64,000 nt of DNA from Macrostomum lignano (Eukaryota), in the NCBI GenBank assembly GCA_002269645.1, contig NIVC01002286.1, positions 1 to 64,000 of the forward strand, written 5' to 3'. How positions within the stretch are numbered: position 1 is the stretch's first letter; each line of letters starts with the position of its first letter. Made by a program: the position numbers and the translations under genes. Under the pieces are notes generated by a model. That model saw nothing but the letters and a program-made list of their open reading frames with translations, had not been told where the DNA came from and searched no databases. Positions 5,352 to 53,394 of the stretch are shown piece after piece.

Positions 5352-7165
5352 CTCTGATTCAGCACACTACAGATCTGATTCAGCACACTGCAGATCTGAT
5401 TCAGCACACTGCAGATCTGATTCAGCACACTGCAGATCTGATTCAGCACACTGAAGATCTGATTCAGCACTGCAGATCTGATTCAGCACACTTCAGATCT
5501 GATTAAGCACTGCAGATCTGATTCAGCACACTGCAGATCTGATTCAGCACACTGCAGATCTGACTCAGCACACTACAGATCTGATTCAGCACAGTGTAGA
5601 TGTGATTCAGCACACTGCAGATTTGACTCAGCACACTACAGATGATTCAGCACACTGCAGATGATTCAGCACAGTGTAGATGTGATTCAGCACTCTGCAG
5701 ATCTGATTCAGCACACTACAGATGATTCAGCACACTGCAGATGATTCAGCACACTGCAGATCTGATTCAGCACACTGCAGATCTGACTCAGCACACTGCA
5801 GATCTGATTCAGCACACTGCAGATCTGATTCAGCACACTACAGATCTGATTCAGCACTCTGCAGATCTGATTCAGCACACTACAGATCTGATTCAGCACA
5901 CTGCAGATCTGATTCAGCACACTGCAAATCTGATTCAGCACACTGAAGATCTGATTCAGCACACTGCAGATCTGATTCAGCACACTGAAGATCTGATTCA
6001 GCACTGCAGATCTGATTCAGCACACTTCAGATCTGATTAAGCACTGCAGATCTGATTCAGCACACTGCAGATCTGATTCAGCACACTGCAGATCTGACTC
6101 AGCACACTGCAGATCTGATTCAGCACACTACAGATCTGATTCAGCACAGTGTAGATGTGATTCAGCACTCTGCAGATCTGATTCAGCACACTACAGATGA
6201 TTCAGCACACTGCAGATGATTCAGCACACTGCAGATCTGATTCAGCACACTGCAGATCTGACTCAGCACACTGCAGATCTGATTCAGCACACTGCAGATC
6301 TGATTCAGCACACTACAGATCTGATTCAGCACACTGCAGATCTGATTCAGCACACTACAGATCTGATTCAGCACACTGCAGATCTGACTCAGCACACTGC
6401 AGATCTGATTCAGCACACTGCAGATGATTCAGCACACTGCAGATCTGATTCAGCACACTGCAGATCTGACTCAGCACACTGCAGATCTGATTCAGCACAC
6501 TACAGATCTGATTCAGCACACTACAGATCTGATTCAGCACACTACAGATCTGATTCAGCACACTACAGATCTGATTCAGCACACTACAGATCTGATTCAG
6601 CACACTGCATATCTGATTCAGCACACTACAGATCTGATTCAGCACACTGCAGATCTGATTCAGCACACTACAAATCTGATTCAGCACACTACAGATCTGA
6701 CTCAGCACACTGCAGATCTGATTCAGCACACTACAGATCTGATTCAGCACACTGCAGATCTGATTCAGCACACTACAAATCTGATTCAGCACACTACAGA
6801 TCTGACTCAGCACACTGCAGATCTGATTCAGCACACTACAGATCTGATTCAGCACACTGCATATCTGATTCAGCACACTACAGATCTGATTCAGCACACT
6901 GCAGATCTGATTCAGCACACTGCAGATCTGATTCAGCACACTGCATATCTGATTCAGCACACTACAGATCTGATTCAGCACACTGCATATCTGATTCAGC
7001 ACACTACAGATCTGATTCAGCACACTGCAGATCTGATTCAGCACACTACAAATCTGATTCAGCACACTACAGATCTGACTCAGCACACTGCAGATCTGAC
7101 TCAGCACACTACAGATCTGATTCAGCACACTGCAGATCTGATTCAGAACTGCAGATCTGATTCAG
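5352..7165. repeat. 21-bp minisatellite (GATCTGATTCAGCACACTGCA)n
   Basis: Directly visible periodicity; produces the spurious IQHTADL/LNQICSV ORFs. Confidence 0.97.
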
Positions 7166-7749
7166 CACCGTGCAAATCTTATGCAGACCTTACCGCTGAA
7201 AAGAACCGAGTCAAAGTCTCAGATTCCAAACCAGATACTTCTATGCAAAAACTCAGTCCATGCAAAGTGCCAACAAGTTGGTGAATTATATATTATTATT
7301 AATATTTACGCTTGCATCATCAAAAAAAGAAAACTTAGCCAGTCACAAACCGACCGAAATAACAAAGAAAAACACATTTAAATTTAAAAGTACACGAGAA
7401 AAAATACAAGGGCATTGCAGAGGCCACCCTGTAAGATGGAGGGCCTCTATGCTAAAAAATTAATTTGCACATTACGAATTCCTACAAAGCGCATCAATCA
7501 GGACTGCTCAGCAATGTGTACAGGAGAATTGCTTTCAATCAGCTTGGGCGCAAAAAACATGATTAGAAATTTGCGCAAGTGTTAACTTGGCTACTAGCAG
7601 AAAGTAGTGTGGTTGGAGTAGTACGCTCGTATAGGTAGGACATGCATAACGGTAAATTAGTCATTTCTTAAATTTACGCGTATTAACGAGAATGAGAGAA
7701 ATTACTGATAAAATAGACTGCTATTTTCACCTACTTTGCTTGCTTCTTG

Positions 7750-8866
7750 TTGTCACTCCTAACCCAATCTGCAAGGATTGTGTCACTCCTAACCCAATCT
7801 GCAAGGATTGTGTCACTCCTAACCCAATCTGCAAGGATTGTGTCATTCCTAACCCAATCTGAGAGGATTGTGTCACTCCTAACCCAATCTGCAAAGATTG
7901 TGTCACTCCTAACCCAATCTGAGAGGATTGTGTCACTCCTAACCCAATCTGCAAAGATTGTGTCACTCCTAACCCAATCTGCAAGGATTGTGTCACTCCT
8001 AACCCAATCTGCAAGGATTGTGTCACTCCTAACAAAATCTGCAAGGATTGTGTCACTCCTAACCCAATCTGCAAGGATTGTGTCACTCCTAACCCAATCT
8101 GCAAAGATTGTGTCATTCCTAACCCAATCTGCAAAGATTGTGTCACTCCTAACCCAATCTGCAAGGATTGTGTCATTCCTAACCCAATCTGAGAGGATTG
8201 TGTCACTCCTAACCCAATCTGCAAAGATTGTGTCACTCCTAACCCAATCTGCAAGGATTGCGTCATTCCTAACCCAATCTGCAAAGATTGTGTCACTCCT
8301 AACCCAACCTGGTAGGATTGTGTCACTCCTAACTCAATCTGGGAGGATTGTGCCACTCCGAATTCAACCTGGGAGGATTGTGTCACTCCTAATCCAATTT
8401 GGGAGGATTGCGTCACTCCTAATCCAATTTGGGAGGATTGTGTCACTCCTTACCCAATTTGGGAGGATTGTGTCACTCCTTACCCAATTTGGGAGGATTG
8501 TGTCACTCCTTACCCAATTTGGGAGGATTGTGTCACTCCTTACCCAATTTGGGAGGATTGTGTCACTCCTTACCCAATTTGGGAGGATTGTGTCACTCCT
8601 TACCCAATTTGGGAGGATTGTGTCACTCCTTACCCAATTTGGGAGGATTGTGTCACTCCTAACCCAATCTGGGAGGATTGTGTCACTCCTTACCCAATTT
8701 GGGAGGATTGTGTCACTCCTAACCCAATCTGGGAGGATTGTGTCACTCCTAACCCAATCTGGGAGGATTGTGTCACTCCTTACCCAATTTGGGAGGATTG
8801 TGTCACTCCTTACCCAATTTGGGAGGATTGTGTCACTCCTAACCTAATCTGGGAGGATTGTGTCAT
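7750..8866. repeat. 30-bp minisatellite (GTGTCACTCCTAACCCAATCTGCAAGGATT)n
   Basis: Columns align at 30-nt period in the sequence listing; the variant drifts to ..CCCAATTTGGGAGGATT at the right end. Confidence 0.97.
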
Positions 8867-9387
8867 TTAATCCACTCTGAGAGGCTTGAGTCAGTCCTAG
8901 CCCATAGTGACAGATTACCAAAAACCAAAGTAACGCGAATCTGTCATAATAATTCACACGCATGAATGCCATTCGGTTTCGCATAGAAGTATGGCAACAA
9001 AAAATCGAAGCGAGCAAGCACGGCAGACTACTATCAGTGCTATCACGACAACAAAAAAAGAAATTGAAGCGCACGTCTGTACAGAAACCAATCGGTGTAA
9101 GCTGCGGAGATGGAGAAGAGAATAGGAGAGATTGACACAAATATTGCGCAGATGGCTACCAACACATATATTGCTAACAGTAGGCTGATTAGAACATATT
9201 GCAAAACATCCTTCAAACTGCCGCACAGCCGACTTTTGGACATCAATAGAAGGCGCTACTCTCTCTCTCCCCCCCCCCTCTCTCTGAAAGACTGCGCAGC
9301 CCCGACAAGCAGTTGGTAAGCAAGCTTGAACGCCGCATTATCAGTCTAGTCTAGGTCAAGATCGGGTCAGAATAAAGGCCAAAGCTC

Positions 9388-10328: not shown

Positions 10329-11020
10329 AGTTGGGACTGATTTGAGCACTGAGTAGCTAGTTGGGATCAATTTGAGCACTGAGTAGCTAGTTGGGATCAA
10401 GTTGAGCACTGACTAGTTAGTTGGGATCAATTTGAGCACTGACTAGCTACTTGGGATCAATTTGAGCACTGACTAGCTACTTGGGATCAATTTGAGCACT
10501 GACTAGCTACTTGGGATCAATTTGAGCACTGACTAGCTAGTTGGGATCAATTTGAGCACTGACTAGCTAGTTGGGATCAATTTGAGCACTGACTAGCTAC
10601 TTGGGATCAATTTGAGCACTGACTAGCTAGTTGGGATCAATTTGAGCACTTGTTAGCTATTTGAGCACTGACTAGCTATTTGGGATCAATTTGAGGACTT
10701 GTTAGCTATTTGAGCACTGACTAGCTATTTGGGATCAATTTGAGCACTGACTAGCTACTTGGGATCAAGTTGAGCACTGACTAGCTACTTGGGATCAAGT
10801 TGAGCACTGACTAGCTACTTGGGATCAATTTGAGCACTGACTAGCTACTTGGGATCAATTTGAGCACTACTAGCTACTTGGGATCAATTTGAGCACTGAC
10901 TAGCTACTTGGGATCAATTTGAGCACTACTAGCTACTTGGGATCAATTTGAGCACTGACTAGCTACTTGGGATCAATTTGAGCACTACTAGCTACTTGGG
11001 ATCAATTTGAGCACTAGTAC
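10329..11020. repeat. 30-bp minisatellite (TTGGGATCAATTTGAGCACTGACTAGCTAC)n upstream of the GRB2 ATG, probably in a 5'UTR intron
   Basis: Visible 30-nt period; possible acceptor ..TGCAAAG|GCATG just before the ATG. Confidence 0.93.
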
Positions 11021-12608: not shown

Positions 12609-15600
12609 TCACGAGGTGCCGCCCGCCCCGCTGCTGCCAACAAAGCCGCTGCCGGACCCGACGCCGCCCACAACTCCGCTGCTGCCGGCTCCGCCGACGC
12701 TGGCACCGCTGGCGGCTCCGGGCACGGCGGCGCCCAGGGTGGTGCCAACGCTGACGTGATGGTCGGGATAGTTGCAAGGCGACTGGTCAATCTGGTCGTA
12801 ATAGATTGTCAGCGACTTCTGCTGGCGAGTCCAGGTCTTCGTGTCCCAGTAGTAATAGAATCCGCGCTCGCCCTGCGGCGCCGGGATCTTCTCAACATTC
12901 TGCTGGCAGCGGGTCACCCACAGCTTCTCGCTCTTGATCCAGCGCCACTCGCGCCTGTGCAGCTCCTTGGCGGCGCTGAGCTGCAGGTGGTCGCAGGTGC
13001 AGTTGTAGAACAGCCAGAACAGCGTCTCGAACTGCAGCTGGTCGAGCGGAGGCGGCGGCAATTTTTCGCGAATCTGACTGCCAACCAGGTACTCCTGTGG
13101 CACCGGATAGTCGATGTACTGCGGCTTGGCTAGGCACTGCTCAGCCCACGGAGAGCCCAGGCAGGAGTAGATCTCGCTGGGCAAATGCGGGCACAGGGTT
13201 CGGAGCATAATGCAGTGTGGTTGAGCATACTGACTAACAAGTAACTGAATGCGATTGGATTTAGAGCGAATTCGGGCATCTGGGTCACCGATTTGGGTAT
13301 CCGGGTCACTGATTCGGGTATCCGGGTCACTGATTTGGGCATCTGGGTCACCGATTTGGGCATCTGGGTCACCGATTTGGGCATCTGGGTCACCGATTTG
13401 GGTATCCGGGTCACTGATTCGGGTATCCGGGTCACTGATTCGGGTATCCGGGTCACCGATTTGGGCATCTGGGTCACCGATTTAAGCATCTGGGTCACCG
13501 ATTTGGGTATCCGGGTCACTGATTCGGGTATCCGGGTCACTGATTCGGGTATCCGGGTCACCGATTTGGGCATCTGGGTCACCGATTTGGGCATCTGGGT
13601 CACCGATTTGGGTATCCGGGTCACTGATTCGGGTATCCGGGTCACTGATTCGGGTATCCGGGTCACCGATTCGGGTATCCGGGTCACTGATTCGGGTATC
13701 CGGGTCACTGATTCGGGTATCCGGGTCACTGATTTGGGTATCTGGGTCACCGATTTGGGCATCCGGGTCACTGATTCGGGTATCCGGGTCACTGATTCGG
13801 GTATTCGGGTCACTGATTTGGGTATCCGGGTCACTGATTCGGGTATCCGGGTCACTGATTTGGGTATCCGGGTCACCGATTTGGGTATCCGGGTCACTGA
13901 TTTGGGCATCTGGGTCACCGATTTGGGTATCCAGATCACTGATTTGGGCATCTGGGTCACTGATTTGGGCATCTGGGTCACTGATTTGGGCATCTGGGTC
14001 ACTTATTTGGGCATCTGGGTCACTGATTTGGGCATCTGGGTCACTGATTTGGGCATCTGGGTCACCGATTTGGGCATCTGGGTCACCGATTTGGGCATCT
14101 GGGTCACTGATTTGGGTATCTGGGTCACCGATTTGGGCATCTGGGTCACTGATTTGGGCATCTGGGTCACTGATTTGGGCATCTGGGTCACTAATTTGGG
14201 CATCTGGGTCACTGATTTGGGCATCTGGGTTACTGATTCCGGTATCTGGGTTACCAATTTGGGTATCTGGGTTACTGATTTGGGTATCTGGGTTACTGAT
14301 TTGGGTATCTGGGTTACCGATTTGGGTATCTGGGTTACTGATTTGGGTATCTGGGTTACCGATTTGGGTATCTGGGTTACTGATTTGGGTATCTGGGTTA
14401 CTGATTTGGGTATCTGGGTTACCGATTTGGGTATCGGGGTCACCGATTTGGGTATCCGGGTCACCAATTTGGGTATCGGGGTCACCGATTTGGGTATCCG
14501 GGTCACCAATATGCTTTTCAAAGTTATTGATTCGGGTATCCGGGTCACTGATTCGGGTATTCGGGTCACTGATTTGGGTATCCGGGTCACTGATTCGGGT
14601 ATCCGGGTCACTGATTTGGGTATCCGGGTCACCGATTTGGGTATCCGGGTCACTGATTTGGGCATCTGGGTCACCGATTTGGGTATCCAGATCACTGATT
14701 TGGGCATCTGGGTCACCGATTTGGGCATCTGGGTCACTGATTTGGGCATCTGGGTCACCGATTTGGGTATCCAGATCACTGATTTGGGCATCTGGGTCAC
14801 TGATTTGGGCATCTGGGTCACTGATTTGGGCATCTGGGTCACTGATTTGGGCATCTGGGTCACTGATTTGGGCATCTGGGTCACTGATTTGGGCATCTGG
14901 GTCACCGATTTGGGCATCTGGGTCACCGATTTGGGCATCTGGGTCACTGATTCGGGTATCTGGGTCACCGATTTGGGCATCTGGGTCACTGATTTGGGCA
15001 TCTGGGTCACTGATTTGGGCATCTGGGTCACTGATTTGGGCATCTGGGTCACTAATTTGGGCATCTGGGTCACCGATTTGGGCATCTGGGTTACTGATTC
15101 CGGTATCTGGGTCACCGATTTGGGTATCCGGGTCACCAATATGCTTTTCAAAGTTATTGATTCGGGTATCCGGGTCACTGATTCGGGTATTCGGGTCACT
15201 GATTTGGGTATCCGGGTCACTGATTCGGGTATCCATGTCACTGATTTGGGTATCCGGGTCACCGATTTGGGTATCCGGGTCACTGATTTGGGCATCTGGG
15301 TCACCGATTTGGGTATCCAGATCACTGATTTGGGCATCTGGGTCACCGATTTGGGCATCTGGGTCACTGATTTGGGCATCTGGGTCACCGATTTGGGTAT
15401 CCAGATCACTGATTTGGGCATCTGGGTCACTGATTTGGGCATCTGGGTCACTGATTTGGGCATCTGGGTCACTGATTTGGGCATCTGGGTCACTGATTTG
15501 GGCATCTGGGTCACTGATTTGGGCATCTGGGTCACCGATTTGGGCATCTGGGTCACCGATTTGGGCATCTGGGTCACTGATTCGGGTATCTGGGTCACCG

Positions 15601-17711
15601 ATTTGGGCATCTGGGTCACTGATTTGGGCATCTGGGTCACTGATTTGGGCATCTGGGTCACTGATTTGGGCATCTGGGTCACTAATTTGGGCATCTGGGT
15701 CACCGATTTGGGCATCTGGGTTACTGATTCCGGTATCTGGGTTACCAATTTGGGTATCTGGGTTACTGATTTGGGTATCTGGGTTACTGATTTGGGTATC
15801 TGGGTTACCGATTTGGGTATCTGGGTTACTGATTTGGGTATCTGGGTTACCGATTTGGGTATCTGGGTTACTGATTTGGGTATCTGGGTTACTGATTTGG
15901 GTATCTGGGTTACCGATTTGGGTATCGGGGTCACCGATTTGGGTATCCGGGTCACCAATTTGGGTATCGGGGTCACCGATTTGGGTATCCGGGTCACCAA
16001 TATGCTTTTCAAAGTTATTGATTTGGGTATCGGGGTCATCGATTTAGTATCGGCAGGGTGACTGCTGAAAGCCATAACCATAGACTTACGAAGTATTATT
16101 CAGCGGCAAGCCCAAAGAGTTGAGGTCGATGCCGGGCGCTATGATAACAAAGTTGGGATTCTCGTCTCCCACTTTTATTAGCGACAACAGGCCGATCATG
16201 CCGAACTGGTCCCGAACCATGCTCGCCGGGACGCCAGTAATGGAGCCGTTCTGGTGGTACACCACTGTGCTGCGACCCAGAGGTGTCATGGGGTCCGCTG
16301 AGCCGGGCAGACCCGCCGAAGCCGCCGCTGCAGCGGCCGTCCCGCCGTCGGCAAGGCTGCCGCCTGTCCCGGACACGCCAGCCGTCGCTAACGATGCTGA
16401 GTTCGGCGGCATGGCGACAGACGATGAGGCTGCAACGGAGCCAGGCGCGGCGGAAGTGGCCGGCTGAGTGCCCGGCAAAGCGGGGAAATCCTCCTGCTGG
16501 ATGCTGAACTCCTCGGGTGCTTTGCTAGCCGCGGAAACGAAGTTAATGCGGCCGGACACTCCGGCCGAGGCTGGCCGGCCAAGCATGGGAAACTCGGACG
16601 GGTCGGGTAGCCGCTTCTGCCCGACAGGGGCCTGCAGCATCAAGCCGGGGATGCTCCGCGCTTGGCTGCCGCCGCTGCCGCTGGCCAAGCCGAGGCCGCT
16701 TCCGGGCGGGACGCCGGATGCCAGACGGCCGCTGCCGACGCCGACAATCCCGACGCCGCTGCCGCCGGCGCCTTGTAGCTTGCCCGAGGCGCTGATCTGG
16801 CGCGAATAAGTCGCCATGGACGAGGCTGGCGAGCCAACGGACGACAGCAGGCCGTCGCTGAAGTCTGCTGACGAATGGTCGAATAGCTTACTGGCGCGCT
16901 GCTGGTCCGGCTGCGAGGACGGGCCCGGCGCTCCCAGCTGCTGGGGGAACAGGCCGGAGTTCGGCTGCTTGCCCACTGCCGAGTTCAGCGGCATGGAGGA
17001 TTGAAATCCTGCACCAATTATGCCGCCACCGCCACCGCTGCTCGATGACGGCACTGGGCTGGTGTTGCGCATCAGGCCGGGGAAGCCGCCGTCATCTGGC
17101 GACCAGCCGTATTGGTCCGTGTTGCTGAAGGCTCTGGGGACGGGGATGGGCGATTAGGAGATATACTACTGATACAGTAGCTTATAAATGATAATCTAGA
17201 GATACTACTATTACAGTAGCTTATAAATGATAATCCAGAGATACTACTGATACAGTAGCTTATAGATTATAATCCAGAGATACTACTGATACAGTAGCTT
17301 ATAAATGATAATCCAGAGATACTACTGATACAGTAGCTTATAAATGATAATCTAGCGATACTACTGATACAGTAGCTTATAAATGATAATCTAGACATAC
17401 TACTGATACAGTAGCTTATAAATGATAATCTAGACATACTACTGATACAGTAGCTTATAAATGATAATCTAGACATACTACTGATACAGTAGCTTATAAA
17501 TGATAATCTAGACATACTACTGATACAGTAGCTTATAAATGATAATCTAGACATACTACTGATACAGTAGCTTATAAATGATAATCTAGACATACTACTG
17601 ATACAGTAGCTTATAAATGATAATCTAAAGATACTACTTATACAGTGGTTTAGTTATAGCAGTTAATACAGGTGGAAAAGTCAAGCGAACTCACGGTCCT
17701 AATCCTGCCAT
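12609..17711 (-). CDS. CNOT2: CCR4-NOT subunit 2 (NOT2); coding exons 17711-17695 (exon 17786-17695), 17133-16090 and 13176-12609
   Basis: FSIQQEDFPALPG, DQFGMIGLLSLI..GIDLNSLGL.LN and NOT-box SPWA..IDYPVPQEY..LFWLFY..QLSAAKEL..REWRW..ERGFYYYWD. Junctions are phase-consistent (TC|gt..ag|C = Ser; CC|gt..ag|A = Pro). The start codon at 17711 is tentative. A probable 5'UTR exon donor GTAAGT lies at 23174. Confidence 0.92.
13273..16040. repeat. 21-bp minisatellite (GGGTCACYGATTYGGGYATCY)n filling the 2.9-kb CNOT2 intron
   Basis: Visible period; lies between donor 16089 and acceptor 13177. Confidence 0.97.
17158..17645. repeat. 39-bp minisatellite (TACTACTGATACAGTAGCTTATAAATGATAATCTAGACA)n in a CNOT2 intron
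   Basis: About 12 copies; internal hairpin CTACTG-ATA-CAGTAG. Confidence 0.95.
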
Positions 17712-25397: not shown

Positions 25398-25925
25398 TTA
25401 CGAGCGCACCCCGGATGCAGCATTTTCTGCTACAATTGGAGCAGCAGCAGTTGGAGCATCCACAGCAGCAGGTGGAGCGGCGGCAGCTTCTCCGCCATTG
25501 TTGACTGCCTGAGGCTGAGCTGCTGCCTTAGTGGCAGCGGCAGCGGCGGCCACCTCGGTGGAATCGGCCGGCGGCAGGTCGGACTTGGCCACCTGGACGA
25601 AGCCAACAAGAAGGTCGCCATCCGCGCCCTGAGCAGCCACGGCGGCTTTGACCTCGGCCGAGTCGGCGGGCGGAACGTCAGCGCCGTTTACCATTTCGAA
25701 ATCATCGGTGGCAACATCCCTGACTGCAGCTGGCGGCTCCGCCGGCGCCTTAGCAGGCGATGTGGACCGCGGCTTCGCCGACGGAGTTTTCTGCTTTTTA
25801 GCCGGAGATGGGGCGGCAGGCGGCGGTGGCGGAGGCTGCGGCCGGGATGCCAGACGGCCGGAGCGGCGCTGCGGCTGGGCGTTGGCCGAGTCGGTAGCGG
25901 CGGCGGCAGAACGTTTTCGTGGCAT
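25398..25925 (-). CDS. 175-aa intrinsically disordered basic/acidic protein with an HMGN-like nucleosome-binding motif (PQRRSGRLASRP)
   Basis: GC-rich coding-like island. ATG at 25925 (MPRKRS) follows a strong acceptor CAACTTTCAG at 25973; stop TAA at 25398; a long CpG-normal 3'UTR-like region follows. The HMGN assignment is inference from motif and charge architecture. Confidence 0.8.
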   Translation of the reverse strand: MPRKRSAAAATDSANAQPQRRSGRLASRPQPPPPPPAAPSPAKKQKTPSAKPRSTSPAKAPAEPPAAVRDVATDDFEMVNGADVPPADSAEVKAAVAAQGADGDLLVGFVQVAKSDLPPADSTEVAAAAAATKAAAQPQAVNNGGEAAAAPPAAVDAPTAAAPIVAENAASGVRS

Positions 25926-28900
25926 GTTGCTTATAAAATCAGCTGATTGCAATTTACAGCTGAGCTCTATGGCTGAAAGTTGATGAAAACAGCGCATTAC
26001 TCAAATTTGACTCAAATTCCTAATTGCTCAACAACAAAAAGTCAAGCTACTTTGTCAGATTTTTACTGCCCCTACTTAAATACTTTTTAGTCGATGATAG
26101 CTGTGTCATTTGGCATTCTAAGTCAAAACTCAAGATGCCAATTTTGAATGCCAGGATGCCAGACTGACATCGGTCAAAAAATATATCAGCATCTCTACCT
26201 TATGCCTTAACATTGTTGAGCCTCTCTGATCCACAGAAGCTGCAAGTCTACAGATTGTTCAGATTTGACAATCCTAAGAACCTAATATACTTATATAATT
26301 ATTGAAATATCCAATGAAATATGAATTTAAAAAGTACAGAACTTATATTAGATAGCATCTGGCTTGGAAAACTGGGGTGGCAATTTGACAACTAGGATGA
26401 AAAATTCAAGATCCAAAATTTTAAGCTGATGTGTTATAAAACACATAGACTAGATAACTACACTTTGGTGCCAAACACTGATTTTAAGCCATATGATAAA
26501 TGTCTAGTTGTAAGGCTTGTTATATATTAGAATGTTATTATTAGTGACTGCAATAAAATTTGCCTTGACACTTTTAATAATTATTTTTTATAATTTTGAG
26601 GTAGGCCTTGTTATTAAGAAATGTTTTCTCAGAAAGTGTTGCATTTGAAAGTATGCTAATTTGTTTAAATGCATAAAATATTAGAAATACTGTAAATATT
26701 TTAATTTTTTTAAATCACACTAAAAGGGCTTATAAATACATGAGCAGCTAGCAAGAGACGAATCAACTTGCCTTGTGCTTGAGACTTGTTCCATTCAAAA
26801 CCTTAAGCAATACTACTGAGTTAAGTTATTTAAAAGCATCAAAGCCTCAAGATTGGGAGAAGTTGATCCATTCTTAGAGAACAATATATCCCGATTCATA
26901 ATCTAAAAAGTCACCTTAGAAGGTAGAAATCCTACCACAGAGTAGAGTAATCTAGACTCAGGGTCTGGGAAACCTGCCTCAGGCAAAATACCTAGCAAGT
27001 AAGCTGTGACCCTCTGATCCTGAGAATTCCTAGGACTGAATGAATAAAAATTGTTAGAGTAGTATAGAAATAGAGTCGACAGTGCCATAAGACTGCTCAG
27101 GCTAGTAGATAAGTACATGCGCTACCAGTAGATAATTACATATGCTACCAATATAAAAAGTAAACATATAGGCAATAAGTACATTCATGCAACACCTGTA
27201 AAAGTACAAGTAATATAAAAATCATTATAACAACTTAGTGGCCGCTTTTTAAAAAGAAATTTATAGGGAAAGAAGAAACAGCCTTATCACAGCTGGTATC
27301 AGAAGTAAGATCATCCCAGAGGATAGAAATTAGCCCTGGGACAAATTTGTTTTTTTATTTATATAAGTTTTAGAGAAAATAGCAAATTTATTGTTTCTTG
27401 TTATTTTCAAGTAGTAGTTAATTTTAGGTGTGAATTTTTTTTACAAATTTCTTTTATAATCATATGCATTTTGTTTTTTTGTGGCACAAAATTTTTTGCC
27501 CATTGGCTAGAGTATTAGCACCCATTAAAATGCAGAATCTATAGTAGAATTAGAATAGAATAATAGTTAAAAATGCAGAATTTGAAGCAAAATTATAAAT
27601 TGTAAATTTAAAAAAAATAAAGTATAGAAAAAGGCAAAATATTTGAATCAATCAAAAATAAGTAAATTTCTAAATTGATATATATATATCTATGAGTAAA
27701 AAATATTTTTATTTAAAAAATACATTTAGCCTTTACAGCAATATAACCATATAAAAATAAATTTATAGTATAATATGATTCTACATTAGGGCTAGGAATA
27801 CTAAACTAAACTATAAATAGCAACATATAGGCCCTATTAGGCTATTAGTAATTAGGCCTATTAAAAGTAATAAATATAGTTTCCTTCATGAATAATATAG
27901 CTGATAAGCAAGCAGGTAGCCAGGATTCATGTTAGAGGGAAAAGATAGAGATATAAATCCATCTTCAATAGAAGTGATGGAAGCAAAATATAAAAGCAAT
28001 AAAAAATCTCTAATGTCCCCCTCTTTGTGTCCATTGCTACACAGATAGATCCCTAAAAGATGGCCTTTACCATAGTCAGGATCATGTCATTGTATATGCC
28101 AGAATAAAAAGTCCCCTAAAAAATCTATGCCACTTCATACTGAAATGTATGCCAAGGTCCAAGGAACTTACGCCAGGTTTTCTAGGCTTTGCAACAATAA
28201 ATGACCTTTTTTTTACATGTTACATTTTTAACAATAAAAATTTAACAAATGTGTGGTTTTCCTTTAAAGTAAATTTTTGTTTAATTTTTTGTTTAAGTTT
28301 TTTTTAGAAAATCAACACAATTAGTTTGCATGGAATTTTAATTTTTTATAAATCACGAATAGTTATGAACTTTCATCTTTGCTTACTAGTTTTACGGTTT
28401 TTATGATTTTATAATAAGATTCTGAGGTTACGGTGTTATGCCAACAATTGCTAATATTAACTTTAGCGTAAAGGTATGCTGCTTGGCATATTTACGCCAC
28501 GGCATCACGCCAAAAGGTACGCCAAATATATTTTGCCTCATTTTTTTATGCCAATTGTATGCCAAAAAAGTAAAATTTTCAATTGTACGCCGGAAATTTC
28601 CGGCGTAATGTACATCATCTTGACTATGAGGCCTTTATAGCTTTGGGGTCTGCATCCTCCCCAATGGCTATATGCTAGCTATGCATGCCTAGCACACTGG
28701 AAGTCTCTATTATCTTTCAGAATGAGGTTCTCACTATTAGCTCCTACATAGCAGTGCTGATTCACTTGCAAAACAAGGAAGTGGCAACTCCCTTTATATA
28801 TCCTTGCCTTTGGCTCTGATCTCTGCAGCTATAATCAATTGCAACATTGATACTTGGGCCTCTGCCTTGCATAGGGACAGATGGATGAACCTTACTAACT

Positions 28901-32839: not shown

Positions 32840-33506
32840 TGCCAAATGAGTGCGCGAGTGCGATTCCTGGAAACAATAACTGTTTGCTGGCCAATTAGCA
32901 AACTGGAATCAGAATCCCTCTGCTGTTTATCCAATCCCCTTTTTTATTCTTTTCGTCTATTTGATTTTTGTGTCCGCTATACTCTCTTCGTGTTCTGTCT
33001 TTTCTTTCTTTACACAAAACAAAAAGCTCTTATCGGTTTTTAATCTGTGTTTTTATTTGTAGCAGATGCTGTTACACTACTTTGAGTAGGCGCGACGTTG
33101 TAATTTTCCGCGCGTTTTTTCACTTCGATAATTATAGTGGTGTTTTTTTATTTTTTATTAAAAATCAGTTCTTAAGCTGACCACAGTTTTATTGGGGCTG
33201 GGCCATACAGTAAGGCAATCAGCTGTTTCAGACTCGCAGTGTTTTCATATCACAACGAAATTACCTTGGTGGGACCAAGCGAATCTGTTAGGTTTGTTAT
33301 TTCCAACAGTAGATATTTTGTTTGTATCTCAAATCCCAAACCTATTAAAATACATTGTCTCTTTATTTAGACTACACAAATATATCACGTGTCTCGACAT
33401 GACCATGCAGCGTGCTTTTGTATGTTTTGTTCCTAGGCGGAACCAAATTTTCTCTTACAGTTCCTTTGCATTGCTTTTTAGTGTAGATTTTTAAAGAGTT
33501 TTATAC

Positions 33507-36500
33507 ATCCCAATCAATGGGAGTTATCCATCACAATCAATGGGAGTTATCCATCACAATCAATGGGAAATATCCATCCCAATCAATGGGAAATATCCAT
33601 CCCAATCAATGGGAAATATCCATCCCAATCAATGGGAAATATCCATCCCAATCAATGGGAAATATCCATCCCAATCAATGGGAAATATCCATCCCAATCA
33701 GTGGGAAATATCCATCCCAATCAATGGGAGTTATCCATCCCAATCAATGGGAAATATCCATCCCAATCAATGGGAGTTATCCATCCCAATCAATGGGAAA
33801 TATCCATCCCAATCAATGGGAGTTATCCATCCCAATCAATGGGAAATATCCATCCCAATCAATGGGAGTTATCCATCCCAATCAATGGGAAATATCCATC
33901 CCAATCAATGGGAGTTATCCATCCCAATCAATGGGAAATATCCATCCCAATCAATGGGAGTTATCCATCCCAATCAATGGGAAATATCCATCCCAATCAA
34001 TGGGAGTTATCCATCCCAATCAATGGGAAATATCCATCCCAATCAATGGGAGTTATCCATCCCAATCAATGGGAAATATCCATCCCAATCAATGGGAGTT
34101 ATCCATCACAATCAATGGGAAATATCCATCCCAATCAATGGGAAATATCCATCCCAATCAATGGGAGTTTTCCATCCCAATCAATGGGAAATACCCATCC
34201 CAATCAATGGGAGTTATCCATCACAATCAGTGGGAAATATCCATCCCAATCAATGGGAGTTATCCATCCCAATCAATGGGAGTTATCCATCCCAATCAAT
34301 GGGAGTTATCCATCCCAATCAATGGGAAATATCCATCCCAATCAATGGGAGTTATCCATCCCAATCAATGGGAAATATCCATCCCAATCAATGGGAGTTA
34401 TCCATCACAATCAATGGGAAATATCCATCCCAATCAATGGGAAATATCCATCCCAATCAATGGGAGTTTTCCATTCCAATCAATGGGAAATACCCATCCC
34501 AATCAATGGGAGTTATCCATCACAATCAATGGGAAATATCCATCCCAATCAATGGGAGTTATCCATCACAATCAGTGGGAAATACCCATCCCAATCAGTG
34601 GGAAATATCCATCCCAATCAATGGGAAATATCCATCCCAATCAATGGGAGTTTTCCATCCCAATCAATGGGAAATACCCATCCCAATCAATGGGAGTTAT
34701 CCATCACAATCAATGGGAAATATCCATCCCAATCAATGGGAGTTATCCATCCCAATCAATGGGAAATACCCATCCCAATCAATGGGAGTTATCCATCACA
34801 ATCAATGGGAAATATCCATCCCAATCAATGGGAGTTTTTCATCCCAATCAATGGGAGTTTTCCATCCCAATCAATGGGAAATACCCATCCCAATCAGATG
34901 GAAATACCCATCCCAATCAGTGGGAAATATCCATCACAATCAGTGGGAAATATCCATCCCAATCAATGGGAAATATCCATCCCAATCAATGGGAGTTATC
35001 CATCCCAATCAATGGGAGTTATCCATCCCAATCAATGGGAAATATCCATCCCAATCAATGGGAGTTATCCATCCCAATCAATGGGAAATATCCATCCCAA
35101 TCAATGGGAGTTATCCATCACAATCAATGGGAAATATCCATCCCAATCAATGGGAAATATCCATCCCAATCAATGGGAGTTATCCATCCCAATCAATGGG
35201 AGTTATCCATCCCAATCAATGGGAAATATCCATCCCAATCAATGGGAGTTATCCATCCCAATCAATGGGAAATATCCATCCCAATCAATGGGAGTTATCC
35301 ATCCCAATCAATGGGAAATATCCATCCCAATCAATGGGAAATATCCATCCCAATCAATGGGAGTTTTCCATCCCAATCAATGGGAGTTTTCCATCCCAAT
35401 CAATGGGAAATACCCATCCCAATCAGATGGAAATACCCATCCCAATCAATGGGAAATATCCATCCCAATCAATGGGAGTTTTCCATCCCAATCAATGGGA
35501 GTTTTCCATCCCAATCAATGGGAAATACCCATCCCAATCAGATGGAAATATCCATCCCAATCAATGGGAAATATCCATCCCAATCAATGGGAAATATCCA
35601 TCCCAATCAATGGGAGTTTTCCATCCCAATCAATGGGAGTTTTCCATCCCAATCAATGGGAAATACCCATCCCAATCAGATGGAAATATCCATCCCAATC
35701 AATGGGAAATATCCATCCCAATCAGTGGGAAATACCCATCCCAATCAGTGGGAAATATCCATCCCAATCAATGGGAAATATCCATCCCAATCAATGGGAA
35801 ATATCCATCCCAATCATTGGGAAATATCCATCCCAATCAATGGGAAATATCCATCCCAATCAATGGGAAATATCCATCCCAATCAATGGGAAATATCCAT
35901 CCCAATCAATGGGAGTTATCCATCACAATCAGAGGAAAATATTCATCCCAATCAATGGGAGTTACCCATCCCAATCAATGGGAAATACCCATCCCAATCA
36001 ATGGGAAATACCCATCCCAATCAATGGGAAATACCCATCCCAATCAATGGGAAATATCCATCCCAATCAATGGGAGTTATCTATCCCAATCAGTGGGAAA
36101 TATCCATCCCAATCAATGGGAGTTATCCATCCCAATCAGTGGGAAATATCCATCCCAATCAATGGGAGTTATCCATCACAATCAGTGGGAAATATCCATC
36201 CCAATCAATGGGAGTTATCCATCCCAATCAATGGGAGTTATCCATCCCAATCAGTGGGAAATATCCATCCCAATCAATGGGAAATATCCATCCCAATCAG
36301 TGGGAAATATCCATCCCAATCAGATGGAAATATCCATCCCAATCAATGGGAGTTATCCATCCCAATCAATGGGAGTTATCCATCCCAATCAATGGGAGTT
36401 ATCCATCCCAATCAATGGGAAATATCCATCCCAATCAATGGGAAATATCCATCCCAATCAATGGGAAATATCCATCCCAATCAATGGGAAATATCCATCC

Positions 36501-36810
36501 CAATCAATGGGAAATATCCATCCCAATCAATGGGAAATATCCATCCCAATCAATGGGAAATATCCATCCCAATCAATGGGAGTTATCCATCCCAATCAAT
36601 GGGAAATATCCATCCCAATCAATGGGAGTTATCCATCCCAATCAATGGGAAATATCCATCCCAATCAATGGGAGTTATCCATCACAATCAATGGGAAATA
36701 TCCATCCCAATCAATGGGAAATATCCATCACAATCAATGGGAGTTATCCATCCCAATCAATGGGAAATATCCATCCCAATCAATGGGAAGTATCCATCCC
36801 AATCAGTGGG
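33507..36810. repeat. 3.3-kb 23-bp satellite (ATCCATCCCAATCAATGGGAAAT / ..GGGAGTT)n
   Basis: Visible period with two alternating variants; internal inverted repeat TCCCA-N5-TGGGA. Confidence 0.98.
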
Positions 36811-36903
36811 AATTGGAGAGCATCCGATAGAGCATCTTTTGAGAGCATCCGATATGTATCGATAGCAAACTATTTCGGCACCCACAGCAGCACAAATAGA
36901 AAA

Positions 36904-38397
36904 ATGTCGTCTTCTTCCTCCCTGTCAATGCCGGTCGCTGATGAGTCCGAGGATGCAGAGGAGAAGCTGCGCATTCTGCAGCAGCTGCTGGCCTCGCAAG
37001 ACTCCGGCGCAGCCCCAGCCGCCGCCGGTGCCCCGGCCAGCCGTCAGGTGGCCTACGAGCCCGGGCTGTGCATCAAAACCCGTCAGGAGCCGGGCGGTGC
37101 CAAGCTGTTCATCAACTTGTGCCGCAGCGCCGACCTGCCGGCGCCGCCAGAGGCCTCGGACGAGCAGCTGGCCAAACTGCTGGAGGATCCGGACAGCCAC
37201 GCGGCCAGATTCCGGGTGCCGCTGAGCATCGGCGAGCCGCGGGCCGAGCGAGATCACGCGGGCTCCGCGTGCACAGCGATTGACGTTGTGGCCCACCCGA
37301 GCCTGCTGGACCGGATGCGCGCCAGCGACCTGTACCGGAACTTCGCCATCAGCTTGGCTGTGGAGGGCGCCGAGGCCAAGCACGGGTTGAGTTTGAGCAG
37401 GCGGGATCTGACTGTGCTGCGGAATAAGAAATACGTTGGCAGCATTGAGCAGCAGGCGGCGCAGCACTTTGTGCGGTCCGGCGGCCCGCCAAAGCCGTTT
37501 ATTCAGGTAAGACCGTTTTCTTCTGAAGATCGCCCATTGGAAATCTCCCCTAAGATTCCAACCTTGGAAATCCTCTCTATCTCTAGAAATCGCTCATTGG
37601 AAATCTCCCCTATCTGAGAATCGCCCATTGGAAATCTCCCCTATCTGAGAATCGCCCATTGGAAATCTCCCCTATCTGAGAATCGCCCATTGGAAATCTT
37701 CCCTATCTGAGAATCGCCCATTGGAAATCTTTCCTGACAATTGCCCATTGGAAATCTCCCCCTATCTGACAATTGCCCATTGGAAATCTCCCCCTATCTA
37801 AGAATCGGCCATTGGAAATCTCCCCCTATCTGACAATTGCCCATTGGAAATCTCCCCCTATCTGAGAATCGCCCATTGGAAATCTTCCCTATCTGACAAT
37901 CGCCCATTGGAAATCTCCCCTATCTGAGAATCGCCCATTGGAAATCTTCCCTATCTGAGAATCGCTCATTGGAAATCTCACCTGTCTCCCGAGAGACCCA
38001 GAAAGTCCCCATCTCCCCAGCTGAGTTCAATTGGAGTCGCACCGCCCAAATCCAGGAAGTGTCTGGCAGCGAGGCGACGGCCCCACAGCCCGGCTCGTCT
38101 CCCTCCGTATCGTCGAAGACGCCGCCCCGGCCGGAGTTCCGGCTGGTGCAGAAGCCGCCGTACGGTTCGCCCAGCCATTTCGTGTGCGAGATCCGCCTGC
38201 CGCTCATCAGCTCTGCCGGCTCCTTGCAACTGCAGGTTGGCGGCGACCGCCTGCTGCTCACCTGCCGCAGCCGGGCCTACCGGCTGGACTTCTACCTGCC
38301 CGTCTGCATCGACCAGGCCGCCTGCTGCGCCCAGTTTGATGCCGATAGCAGACTGCTCACCGTTACTATGCCTGTTGAGGGTGGGCCTGCCGCGTAG
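36904..38397 (+). CDS. PIH1D1: PIH1 domain-containing protein 1 (R2TP co-chaperone), 314 aa; exons 36904-37506 and 38056-38397
   Basis: PGLCIKT..KLFINLC..FRVPLSIGEP..CTAIDV (PIH1-N domain) and a C-terminal CS domain (EIRLP..YRLDFYLP..AQFD..LLTVTMPV). Phase-0 intron CAG|GTAAG..TCCAG|GAA. Confidence 0.94.
37532..37980. repeat. 30-31-bp minisatellite (CGCCCATTGGAAATCTCCCCTATCTGAGAAT)n in the PIH1D1 intron
   Basis: About 14 copies starting ~25 nt after the donor. Confidence 0.93.
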
Positions 38398-38445: not shown

Positions 38446-39026
38446 CAGTGACATTGGCTGCCAGTGTGATATTGACTGCCAGTGTGACATTGACTGCCAG
38501 TGTGACATTGACTGCCAGTGTGACATTGACTGTCAGTGTGACATTGACTGCCAGTGTGACATTAACTGCCAGAGTGACATTGACTGTCAGTGTGACATTG
38601 ACTGCCAGTGTGATATTGACTGTCAGTGTGACATTGACTGCCAGTGTGATATTGACTGCCAGTGTGACATTGACTGTCAGTGCGACATTAACTGTCAGTG
38701 TGACATTGACTGCCAGTGTGACATTGACTGTCAGTGCGACATTAACTGTCAGTGTGACATTGACTGTCAGTGCGACATTAACTGTCAGTGTGACATTGAC
38801 TGCCAGTGTGACATTGACTTTCAGTGTGATATTGACTTTCAGTGTGACATTGACTGTCAGTGTGACATTGACTGCCAGTGTGACATTGACTGTCAGTGTG
38901 ACATTGACTGTCAGTGTGACATTGACTGCCAGTGTGACATTGTCTGCCAGTGTGACATTGACTGCCAGTGTGACATTGACTGCCAGTGTGACATTGACTG
39001 CCAGTGTGACATTGGCTGCCAGTGAC
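38446..39026. repeat. 18-bp minisatellite (CAGTGTGACATTGACTGY)n immediately 3' of the PIH1D1 stop
   Basis: Visible period; produces the spurious CQCDID ORF. Confidence 0.96.
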
Positions 39027-40219: not shown

Positions 40220-42500
40220 ATGGCCGCCGCCCCGCCCGCTGGCAAGACGCCAATCAGCTTACTGCAGGAGTTCAGCGTCAAGCGCTCCATCACCCCGGTG
40301 TACGATCTCATCGCCAACGAGGGCCCGGTGCACGAGCCGCTGTTCGTGTTCCAGTGCCGCGCTGGCGCCTTCTCCGGCATCGGCCGGGGTGTCAGCAAGA
40401 AGCGGGCCAAGCACAATGCCGCTCACGCCACCCTGCGGAAGATGCTGAACGATGGCGCTGCCCTCACCGAGCCTGAGTGCGCCACCATCAACCAGCTGTG
40501 CCAGGCCGACTCTGTTGCACCTTCGGGCAGCTCCGCGGCTGCGGCCGCTGCTGCTGCCAGCGCTGCCGCTGCTGCCGCTGCCGCCGCCGCTGCCGCTGCT
40601 TCAGCTGACGGCGGCGACTACGAAAACTCAGCTGCTGCCGCGGCTGCCACCGACGCGGCTGCCGCCGCTGCCTACCTGGCCAATCTGGAGGAGGACGACG
40701 AGGAGGCGGCCGGAAATCCCGTCGGCGAGCTGCAGGAGCTGTGCCAGCGCCGGCTGTGGCCGCAGGCCGCCTTTCACTTCGCCTGCTCGCCGGGCCCGGC
40801 GCAGACCCGCCAGTTCGTCTGCACTGCCAGCCTGTGGCGCTGGGAGCAGCAGGCCTGCGCCAGGTCCAAGCGCCTGGCTAAACGGCGGGCTGCTCAGGTG
40901 AGGCTGCGAACTTGAGTTTTGGCTGCGGGGGAACTGCGCAGATTGTTGGGGAGCTGCTCATATTGTAGGGAAATTGCTCACATTGTAGGAGAGCTGCTCA
41001 CATTGTAGGGAAACTGCTCAGATTGTTGGGGAACTGCTCAGATTGTTGGGGAACTGCTCAGATTGTTGGGGAACTGCTCAGATTGTTGGGGAACTGCTCA
41101 GATTGTTGGGGAACTGCTCAGATTGTTGGGGAACCTCTCAGATTGTTGGGGAACTCCTCAGATTGTAAGGGAGCTGCTCACATTGTAGAGGAACTACTCA
41201 TTGTTGGGGTGCTGCTCACATTGTAGAGGAACTACTCATTGTTGGGGTGCTGCTCACATTGTAGAGGAACTGCTCATTGTTGGGGTGCTGCTCACATTGT
41301 AGAGGAACTACTCATTGTTGGGGTGCTGCTCACATTGTAGAGGAACTACTCATTGTTGGGGTGCTGCTCACATTGTAGAGGAACTGCTCATTGTTGGGGA
41401 ACTGCTCACATTGAAGAGGAACTGCTCACATTGATGTGGAACTGCTCACATTGTAGAGGAACTGCTTACATTGATGTGGAACTGCTCACATTGTAGAGGA
41501 ACTGCTTACATTGATGTGGAACTGCTCACATTGTAGAGGAACGGCCAAGAAGCGTCCCAAAGTCACTTGCGTCGCCTCAGATTGGTTGCAGATAACACAG
41601 GTAAAATAGGAAAGAAGTGACTCTGAACGATTTTTAAAAACGACAAGATGTCACGGTACAAGTCGCCAAAAAATTGTCAGAGTCCAAGAATCAGTTTGAA
41701 ACGTTTTATTGTCTGCGACTCTGTAACGACTCTGGGGCCATAGAGTCGTATTTGAGCTGTGTTAGAGTCGCACAGCTCACTGTACCGGTAGCGTCACAAG
41801 AGTCGCTAGAGAGTTGTTTGCAACCACTTTTTAGCGATTCTTGTCACGGTACCGTTTTCAATGGGTTAGTGCTCGACAGGCGACAGACAGAGAACAGTCA
41901 AAGAGCTCATACTCCTTTCGTTAAGCCCTCTCCCAACGGCCAGAGTAGGTGTGGTTAATGCAGAACGGTATATAAATCCCTAATTCTGCTATTCCAATCC
42001 CAGCAGCACCCGCCCGTCTCCCACAGGCCCTCCTAGACCGAATCCGCGCCGAGAAGCTGACGATCCCGCAGGAGGAGCTGGACCTACTCGAAGAGGCCGA
42101 AATCCCCGTCGGCCGGGGCGCCGGCGAGGCCGGCCGCTCGTCCAGTCCGGCCAGGCTGTCCGCCACGGCCGGCACCGAGATCAACCGGCTGTTCGCCGGC
42201 CTTCGCGCTCGCAAAGGCGGCCCGACGCTCGGCCAGTTGGCCGAGTCGGCAGGTGGCGATGCCGACTGTCCGAAGGCGAGGCTGGAGGCGCTGGCGGCCG
42301 CGCACCGGTTCGCGCTGAACTTTCACGACTTGGCCGCGGGGCGCAGCGGCAAGGCGCCCTGCCTCCTGCGCCTGGGCACCGCGCCGCCGCTGGCAGCCGC
42401 AGGGTCCGGCGCCACGCCGGAGGAGGCGCGCGTCGAAGCCTGCCGCGCCGCTTTGGAGGCGCTGGCGGTGCTGACGGACCCGCACGGGCGGCCAGTCTAA
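40220..42500 (+). CDS. TARBP2: TRBP/PACT/Loquacious-family dsRNA-binding protein with three dsRBDs, 383 aa; exons 40220-40897 and 42027-42500
   Basis: dsRBD1 KTPISLLQE..EGPVHEPLFVFQC..GRGVSKKRAKHNAA; dsRBD2 NPVGELQELC; dsRBD3-type LEALAAAHRF..CLLRLGTAP..GSGATPEEAR..ALEAL. Phase-0 intron CAG|GTGAG..CACAG|GCC. Exact orthology among TARBP2, PRKRA and loqs is not resolvable here. Confidence 0.88.
40930..41540. repeat. 20-bp minisatellite (GATTGTTGGGGAACTGCTCA)n in the dsRBP intron
   Basis: Visible period starting ~30 nt after the donor. Confidence 0.93.
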
Positions 42501-52848: not shown

Positions 52849-53394
52849 CTGCGAGTCTCTGCAGCCCAGTCTCCCTTTGCCGGGAGATTAAATCTTGGGA
52901 CAAGACAGAGACGGCAGCTGCCGCTTCTTTTGTGGTAATTAACGGCTGAGCTCGAGAAGCTTTTGTCTCCTCTGCCGCCCCTTTGTCGACAACTCTTGTT
53001 GGTAGCTCTTAGATTGCTAATCCTCTTTGCTGTCTCCTAGTAGGCCCTCTGATAAGCGCTATTCCCGATCTGCACTCGTTCTGGGGAGTCTTAATCTGTT
53101 GCAAGCTTTAATCTCGGCATTTCACATCGGGTTTCGGTTTAAACAATGTCTGGCTTGCAGACGTAGGAAATTTTTCTTCATCGTCGCCTTAACCCCCTCC
53201 AAATCTTGGAGAAAATTCACTTAAGATGAAGATATCGAGATTGGCGCTTTGAGATTTAATCAAAGTGCCTTATTTCGGAAATTTCTTTCAAAGATAAAAA
53301 ATCCTTTGACAAATCTTGCCCTTTTCTGTTGTGATAGAGCTGTGTTCTTGTTTCTTCATCTTCCATATTAATCTTTCTGTCTGTCTCCTTCCAC

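Follow-up and report, generated by a model that had tools for sequence, protein, structure and literature searches.

Does a flatworm gene encode a relative of HMGN, a family of nucleosome-binding proteins reported only from vertebrates (PMC12487698), or a protein that resembles HMGN in one short stretch near its N-terminus? The question is raised by an open reading frame (ORF) at 25398..25925 on the minus strand of a 64,000-nucleotide stretch of Macrostomum lignano DNA (assembly GCA_002269645.1, contig NIVC01002286.1, positions 1 to 64,000; this whole stretch is called the window below). The ORF is a complete single-exon coding sequence of 175 amino acids (aa), with its stop codon at 25398-25400. 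A preliminary description had presented the product as an HMGN-like nucleosome-binding protein in an invertebrate; the coordinates and translation that it gave were exact, although it left the minus strand unsaid. The answer favored here, at a probability of roughly 0.6, is that the product is a disordered flatworm protein whose N-terminus may act in the manner of HMGN, tardigrade Dsup and yeast Dot5, and that it is not a demonstrable member of the HMGN family.

A gene with relatives among flatworms

The ORF at 25398-25925 is a real gene. It forms a GC-rich island between AT-rich flanks, with GC contents at the three codon positions (GC1/2/3) of 0.77/0.64/0.59, and the antisense strand over the same region carries an open frame of 205 aa. 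One possibility to be weighed is that the ORF arose by chance in the island, or that the antisense frame is the real gene, the motif being noise. Long open frames on both strands are usual in GC-rich sequence, the GC3 of the minus-strand frame lies below the 0.61-0.91 of neighboring genes, and indexed collections contain neither an identical nor a nearly identical protein; yet the minus-strand translation has 19 significant homologs, which share both of its conserved blocks in the same order, and its start codon coincides with the conserved MPRR start of the family. The homolog searches and alignments refute the chance reading, which we hold to be extremely improbable, and the antisense ORF needs no separate explanation, because the minus-strand frame has significant homologs.

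The start codon is placed at 25925 rather than at an in-frame ATG 24 codons farther upstream (25997), because the upstream stretch belongs to the AT-rich flank and the homologs begin at MPRR; the protein thus starts MPRKRS, and its N-terminal sequence, as translated by program, opens MPRKRSAAAATDSANAQPQRRSGRLASRPQPPPPPPAAPSPAKKQKTPSAKPRS. About 48 nt 5' of the start codon, ttttcatcaactttcag (25973-25989, minus strand) resembles a 3' splice acceptor, and looks like either the acceptor of an intron in the 5' untranslated region or a trans-splice site, trans-splicing being common in flatworms. The canonical AATAAA was not found in the first 200 nt after the stop codon; the variants AATAAT and TATAAA are present.

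The family surfaced only with exhaustive HMMER searching. A word-indexed search with the full-length protein returned no match, and exact look-up in indexed protein collections gave no record of either version of the ORF or of a neighboring G protein-coupled receptor (GPCR), nor of one isoform (P0029) of the Schistosoma mansoni member, Smp_015530. An exhaustive phmmer/HMMER search of a representative library of 1.84 billion proteins found the 19 homologs, with expectation values (E) of 3.5e-12 to 9e-4, and a profile search gave 23 matches, adding further members at E 5e-72 to 1e-25; the named ones among these 23 were all trematode or cestode proteins, and the names of sequence clusters brought in monogenean and further cestode species. 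Every named relative is a flatworm protein: the trematode members come from several Schistosoma species, Trichobilharzia, Clonorchis, Opisthorchis, Fasciola, Fasciolopsis, Echinostoma, Paragonimus and Calicophoron, the cestode members from Echinococcus, Hymenolepis, Mesocestoides, Spirometra and Sparganum, and a monogenean member from Protopolystoma; the S. japonicum member is on record as a messenger RNA clone. Together with a neighboring NOT2 exon whose best named match is Macrostomum lignano, this bears out the assignment of the gene to an invertebrate. The gene belongs to a family that had not been described before and is known to date from flatworms alone.

Its members are labeled “hypothetical” or bear names of the low-complexity type, and no precomputed Pfam domain is assigned to any of them. 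Names such as “CAP-ZIP_m domain-containing,” “Nucleolin-like,” “Mucin-5AC-like” and “futsch” found no support in Pfam scans of those members that were scanned, and were treated as low-complexity artefacts. In the literature searched, Smp_015530 occurs only as a “hypothetical protein” within a list of predicted microRNA targets, and no mention of an HMGN-like motif in flatworms was found.

Two conserved blocks stand in fixed order in the family alignments, the N-terminus and then a module of 45 residues. The window protein, at 175 aa, is shorter than most full-length orthologs (220-325 aa); in the parasite proteins, though not in the window protein, the blocks are separated by an additional acidic linker, rich in Ser and about 80-100 residues long. 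The Schistosoma mekongi ortholog (CM068305.1, positions 3001-3955 of locus L001) has three micro-introns of about 30-35 nt each, none of them within codons 1-42; two of the three keep the frame, so that the unspliced sequence reads almost open. An unannotated cestode genomic copy was also seen (GCA_052426985.1, contig JBNOXG010322878.1, locus L002, 871-1203 and 2062-2376, both on the plus strand). Its first exon, MTRRSTGSSESPAPRRQSARIAAAAATKPTTPSPVKKTPKRAAK, starts MTRRS, with Thr replacing the otherwise invariant Pro2, and is outside the 30 full-length members counted below; the module is encoded by another exon some 1 kb farther downstream, and this fragment was all that the gene caller gave. 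The closest relative of the module, P0005, was considered as close kin of the window species and set aside as a cestode-like gene, its first exon being of the usual RRQSARIAA type.

The N-terminal motif and its resemblance to HMGN

The window protein begins with MPRKR (residues 1-5; 25911..25925, minus strand), a basic start like the MPKRK of HMGN, where the family consensus reads MPRRS. The core RRSGRLAS (residues 20-27; 25845..25868, minus strand), delimited by its invariance in the family and by its placement in hhalign on the HMGN core RRSARLSA, lies within PQRRSGRLASRP, residues 18-29. It runs into a basic Pro/Lys/Ser-rich segment, RPQPPPPPPAAPSPAKKQKTPSAKPRSTSPAKAPAEPP (residues 28-65; 25731..25844, minus strand), with elements of the SPxK type and a PAKKQK resembling a nuclear localization signal; this segment is predicted to contact DNA and to serve in nuclear import. 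In consensus, the first block of the family consists of MPRRS, about 10 variable residues, P-x-x-R-R-x-S-A-R-I-A-A, and then SPAKSPxKSPRRKRQS.

M1, P2 and R3 show little or no variation across the family alignments, and all 30 full-length members have both an MP[RKN][RK] start and, at residues 14-20, a core R-R-x-S-[AG]-R-[IL]-A. In the numbering of the window protein, R20, S22, R24 and A26 never vary. Arg stands at position 19 in all but the window protein; position 21 is Arg in the window protein and in one other member (P0018), and elsewhere T, S, Q, V, M or A. Ortholog cores read RRxSARIAA, and one reads RRRSARLAG. The preliminary description had named loss of the motif from orthologs as the main outcome that would overturn it. 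The motif is instead kept, and kept near the N-terminus, in 30/30 full-length homologs, which span trematodes, cestodes and a monogenean besides the window species, and its position at residues 18-29 of the window protein is confirmed. Since no recovered full-length member has lost the motif, the finding has better support than was available to that first reading.

Motif and module are both under strong conservation. Translating the whole window in six frames (about 128,000 codons) turns up RRS.R[LI] a single time. A rough estimate of chance occurrence from typical residue frequencies gives about 20 instances of RRSxR[LI] per proteome, and well below 0.1 per proteome for one at most 30 residues from an MP[KR][KR] start; conservation throughout the family is the stronger argument for a functional motif.

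Is the protein then an HMGN? PF01101 (HMG14_17) is its only Pfam match (E=0.033 over 24,736 models; residues 4-47 on profile positions 2-48), but the 15.6 bits fall short of the gathering score (23.5), and a scan of 11 orthologs gave no match at E<=1. A recount of RRSGRLASRP against the PROSITE pattern R-R-S-A-R-L-S-A-[RK]-P gives six identities plus an allowed R, that is, the agreement at seven of 10 positions counted before, and the pattern is not matched. (The pattern, PS00355, was taken from the preliminary description, and the RRSARLSA core from PMC6773438.) The start of MPKRK type, followed by a core about 15-25 residues from the N-terminus, is seen in 30/30 members, the HMGN sequences compared being provisional ones. 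The layout claimed for the charges, basic and then acidic, is confirmed by a computed net charge of +11 for residues 1-65 and -10 for residues 66-175, and disorder is predicted. Similarity over the whole length, including the C-terminal regulatory domain, was not found: hhalign gives no confident similarity to HMGN past about residue 30, and a greedy alignment that reached the C-terminal ENG motif of HMGN, placed on the conserved LNG of the family, had zero confidence. The binding domain of vertebrate HMGN genes is spread over small exons; the gene here is a single exon, and the introns of S. mekongi fall outside codons 1-42. By these formal tests, the protein does not qualify as a member of the HMGN family. 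Of the claim of an HMGN-like protein in an invertebrate, the invertebrate gene, the motif and the MP[RK][RK] start stand, while the Pfam, PROSITE and full-length comparisons fail.

Within its first 30 residues, the protein resembles HMGN beyond composition. In an hhalign comparison of the family N-termini with those of human HMGN1-5, family columns 1-28 align with HMGN columns 1-30, RRxSARIAA falling on xRRSARLSA (probability 88%, P=3.2e-6, score 31.1, statistics that are poorly calibrated for 28 low-complexity columns); 300 column shuffles of the family alignment gave a mean score of 9.3 (sd 2.1, maximum 23.5). The HMGN1-5 query sequences are provisional, exact look-up of HMGN1-4 having given no record; the HMGN core and HMGN2 numbering used agree with PMC12487698. 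Since the window sequence had been chosen for its HMGN likeness, it was left out of a rerun to remove this selection effect, and the comparison then gave 80.5% and a score of 28.4, against a shuffle maximum of 17.3 (n=200). The calibration, the provisional queries and the selection of the window sequence weigh against the reading favored here, as do several further points: the shortfall against PF01101, in the window protein and its orthologs alike; the absence from most orthologs of the second Arg of RRSAR (R-R-T/Q/S-S-A-R), which gives a register unlike that of HMGN2, where R23 is a main contact; the better conservation of the module than of the motif, by which the main function may lie there; and the generic character of R-R-x-S, also a PKA/AGC kinase site, and of basic clusters, also import signals. 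Searches of the PDB were uninformative on HMGN: the protein alone had no match in a PDB set that returned no HMGN2 even for an HMGN2 query, and the N-terminal family profile found only a chance match to a toxin (E=0.68).

Set beside HMGN1-5, the window protein thus has a similar basic start (MPRKR and MPKRK), an Arg-rich core at about residues 20-27 (RRSGRLAS and RRSARLSA) followed by a Pro/Lys-rich stretch, and a basic head with an acidic C-terminal half and predicted intrinsic disorder. It differs in that its orthologs read RRxSARIAA, without the second Arg; in a conserved module of 45 aa that has no counterpart in HMGN; in the greater length of the flatworm proteins (175 aa here, 220-325 aa in most orthologs) and their different gene structure; and in being known so far only from flatworms.

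Putative nucleosome binding, possible descent and the C-terminal module

That such motifs are restricted to vertebrates is an outdated premise, since those of Dsup and Dot5 have been shown experimentally (PMC6773438, PMC12487698, PMC13347269). In HMGN2, the RRSARLSA core grips the acidic patch of H2A-H2B through R23 and the anchor R26, and phosphate on S24 is predicted to cause repulsion from the patch (PMC12487698). In tardigrade Dsup, the nucleosome-binding stretch is PPRRSSRLTS, residues 360-370 (PMC6773438, PMC12487698), and in its cryo-electron microscopy structure R363 and R367 are buried, S365 forms hydrogen bonds and R364 is loosely attached (PMC12487698). The flatworm core has the same conserved anchor Arg (RRSGRL, residues 20-25, in the window protein): the invariant R20, S22 and R24 correspond to R363, S365 and R367 of Dsup, the variable position 21 to the loosely bound R364, and the parasite consensus has the same register, with its first Arg four residues before the anchor. 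Dsup, too, is a disordered, highly charged invertebrate protein with an RRSxRL core. Its motif, however, lies near the C-terminus of 445 aa, whereas in the flatworm proteins it follows an MPRR start at the extreme N-terminus, and there is no sequence similarity outside the motif; Dsup is also tardigrade-specific and tied to damage protection, a role at which nothing hints in the flatworm family.

The second precedent, Saccharomyces cerevisiae Dot5, carries RRSARIAT at aa 6-13; without the arginines of this motif it does not bind nucleosomes properly, and acidic-patch mutations abolish that binding (PMC13347269). Here the motif is likewise at the extreme N-terminus, and SARIAT nearly equals the flatworm SARIAA, although the flatworm consensus has one more residue between RR and S. 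Dot5 is otherwise a folded nuclear thiol peroxidase with an N-terminal extension, whereas the flatworm proteins are predicted to be disordered and have no enzymatic domain. Kaposi's sarcoma-associated herpesvirus (KSHV) LANA 5-22, the CENP-C motif, IL-33 and RCC1 also bind the H2A-H2B acidic patch by an arginine anchor (binders cited in PMC12487698 and PMC13347269). They resemble the flatworm motif as short basic peptides of the R-x-S/R-x-R type, but they cannot be aligned with it past the anchor Arg, and none has the layout MP[KR][KR], spacer, RRSxRL.

A deep homolog or a convergent analog had been offered as alternatives at the outset; the HMGN-like N-terminus common to both is borne out (hhalign 88%, 30/30 members), while neither origin is favored by the evidence, which does not separate common descent from convergence. 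Under common descent, the gene would be a true HMGN ortholog: the domain would predate the vertebrates, and flatworms would have kept a genuine descendant of an ancestral HMGN-type architectural chromatin protein and added the C-terminal module. An HMGN-type motif has in fact been argued to be older than the protostome-deuterostome split (PMC12487698). The two kinds of protein also keep one linear order from the first residue onward (MP[KR][KR], then about 12-15 spacer residues, an RRS-A-R-L/I core and a Pro/Lys-rich stretch) and share the layout of basic head and acidic tail, PF01101 is the sole Pfam match of the window protein, and that protein, whose neighbor gene is nearest, among named matches, to free-living Macrostomum, is more HMGN-like than the parasite proteins, as would fit erosion from an HMGN-like ancestor. 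Against this, the match is below the Pfam gathering score and is not seen in any ortholog (n=11), no confident alignment extends beyond about 30 residues, and HMGN has no such module. No intron interrupts the gene here, and the S. mekongi micro-introns lie outside the first 42 codons, unlike the split-exon structure of vertebrate HMGN genes; non-exhaustive searches found no linking sequences from other invertebrate phyla; and the same short motif on unrelated scaffolds (near the C-terminus in Dsup, on a peroxiredoxin in Dot5) indicates that it can arise or move independently. Because the motif is short and occurs on unrelated scaffolds elsewhere, and because no linking sequences are known, we regard descent from an ancestral HMGN as unlikely.

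To return to the reading of a disordered flatworm protein with HMGN-like action: by analogy with the proteins above, its N-terminus probably binds the acidic patch of the nucleosome. Residues 1-30 would form an HMGN-like nucleosome-binding motif, in which R24 would be the arginine anchor inserted into the patch (H2A E61/D90/E92), R20, joined by R21 in the window species, would fill the second arginine pocket (H2A E56/H2B E113), and S22 would hydrogen-bond to the patch. The SPxK/KKQK-rich stretch of Pro, Lys and Ser would contact nucleosomal DNA and double as a nuclear import signal. Because S22 lies within an R-R-x-S basophilic-kinase consensus, it may be a phospho-switch, whose phosphorylation would free the protein from chromatin, as in HMGN. 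The acidic-hydrophobic module of 45 aa would be the effector end, either recruiting a partner to nucleosomes or bending back onto the basic head. We infer the nuclear location, the binding to the acidic patch, the phospho-switch and the part played by the module. Binding of the full HMGN type would mean two molecules per nucleosome core particle, held at the acidic patch whatever the DNA sequence. AlphaFold 3 models of a nucleosome complex are reported to be of low confidence even when the partner is HMGN2 (PMC12487698).

The module itself (residues 74-118, DDFEMVNGADVPPADSAEVKAAVAAQGADGDLLVGFVQVAKSDLP; 25572..25706, minus strand) is the best-conserved part of the protein, and every significant phmmer match aligns here. 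Its family consensus is DFEVVxKSDVPxPDSxEVKAAVSAQGEDGxLLVxFVQVxKDExP (45 aa), with F76, E77, P85, S89, V92, A95, Q99, G100, D102, L105, L106, V110, Q111, V112 and P118 invariant (n=15). The remaining tail (residues 119-175; 25401..25571, minus strand) is Ala-rich, weakly acidic and poorly conserved: 23 of the 55 residues at 121-175 are Ala, their net charge is -3, and column conservation amounts to a single NG and nothing more. What had been described as an Ala/Asp/Glu-rich acidic tail of about 110 aa is therefore acidic, as stated (-10), but it includes the conserved module at residues 74-118, and only residues 119-175 are Ala-rich.

AlphaFold2 with the family alignment gave a mean predicted local distance difference test score (pLDDT) of 57 and a predicted template modeling score (pTM) of 0.25, and the window protein is predicted to be mostly disordered. 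The module alone reaches a pLDDT of 70-86, with short helices at residues 90-98 and 100-105, and values drop below 50 from residue 136 on. A scan of the window protein and 11 orthologs found no Pfam relative of the module, and its profile gave only chance matches of 15 residues to a flavin mononucleotide (FMN)-binding protein in the PDB (E>0.2). The module opens with DDFEMV (residues 74-79; 25689-25706, minus strand), which fits, as a pattern only, the consensus of an LC3-interacting region (LIR), acidic and then F-x-x-V/I. The family consensus at this point is [DG]FE[VM][VI], with D instead of F in P0018; we take it to resemble the LIRs of ULK1 and ATG13, as a lead only. The LLVxFVQV stretch, with its acidic flanks, resembles a SUMO-interacting motif, again as a pattern only.

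Another possibility is that the N-terminal motif is a kinase, 14-3-3 or nuclear-import element that does not bind nucleosomes, and that the module is an adaptor peptide of the LIR or SUMO-interacting type. The module is, after all, the best-conserved part and the sole part with a pLDDT >70, R-R-x-S is a classical basophilic kinase consensus, and [DE]-[DG]-F-E-[VM]-[VI] (D-D-F-E-M-V in the window protein) fits the LIR consensus. The invariance of R24, I/L25 and A26 on the far (C-terminal) side of the serine, however, exceeds that of a kinase site, all members keep the motif at a constant spacing from the N-terminus, and the flatworm consensus is almost that of Dot5, RRSARIAT, which is experimentally validated (PMC13347269). 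We consider such an element without nucleosome binding quite unlikely; its parts are compatible with the nucleosome-binding reading and do not exclude it.

On these comparisons, the apt description is a new flatworm family that joins an HMGN-like motif at the N-terminus to a new module at the C-terminal end, and not “HMGN in an invertebrate.” The family is a concrete candidate from the predicted “untapped realm” of non-vertebrate HMGN-like motifs. It has in common with HMGN the motif and the placing of that motif near the N-terminus, together with the MP[KR][KR] start and the layout of basic and then acidic parts, which is more than Dsup or Dot5 share, although these two had already taken away the surprise of meeting such a motif outside vertebrates. 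Assuming that the N-terminus does bind nucleosomes, flatworms would be a third independent lineage in which to ask which positions of the motif count, with a consensus that lacks the second Arg; the choice between descent and convergence would become testable; a “hypothetical protein” of major human and livestock flukes and tapeworms would acquire a function; and the C-terminal module would be a new nucleosome-tethered effector. If descent were true, the HMGN domain and its N-terminal layout would be at least as old as the bilaterian ancestor, HMGN would not be a vertebrate invention, and flatworms would hold the first phylum-wide invertebrate HMGN lineage, with tractable members (Smp_015530 in Schistosoma; the planarian and Macrostomum models).

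Other genes and repeats of the window

The DNA of the window is metazoan. A NOT2/CNOT2-like exon at 12609-13208 (minus strand; PF04153, E=1.6e-25) has its best named match in Macrostomum lignano, at 55% identity, and matches a protein derived from the Sequence Read Archive (SRR31628394) at 85%. Taken by themselves, these matches and the flatworm homologs of the ORF would point to a source that is probably a flatworm and apparently not M. lignano itself. A Ser/Gly/Ala-rich ORF at 16086-17072 (minus strand), with no Pfam match, might at a guess be an upstream exon of the NOT2-like gene; a 2.7-kb minisatellite with a period of 21 bp (13270-15997) lies between the two, and would be intronic if they form one gene.

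On the plus strand, an ORF of 1366 aa at 33517-37617 consists of a 3.3-kb array of 23-bp repeats running into a PIH1 N-terminal domain (PF08190, E=6e-28). Because the 23-bp repeat is open in all three plus-strand frames, where the PIH1 exon truly begins is ambiguous. An exon at 40220-40915 (plus strand) encodes a double-stranded RNA-binding domain (PF00035, E=1.3e-19) with a poly-Ala tract. The GPCR mentioned above is a single-exon, rhodopsin-family receptor of 371 aa at 51600-52715 (minus strand; PF00001, E=3.5e-23, with weaker matches to nematode Srsx/Srw types); its GC3 is 0.91, and purine/pyrimidine-rich minisatellites lie on both sides of it. A Pfam scan also gave a weak match, below the model cut-off, to a TRAF-type zinc finger at 1014-1616 (minus strand).

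Minisatellite arrays are unusually dense and make up about one quarter of the window, with periods of 9-62 bp, up to 144 copies and 76-100% match. They lie at 5353-7186, 7751-8904, 10340-11015, 13270-15997, 33502-36812, 38448-39024, 49120-50768, 53385-53912, 54475-54922, 55224-56580, 59459-60641, 61156-61877 and 62429-63999. Many of the arrays are free of stop codons in several frames, giving rise to spurious ORFs of 200-1366 aa on both strands.

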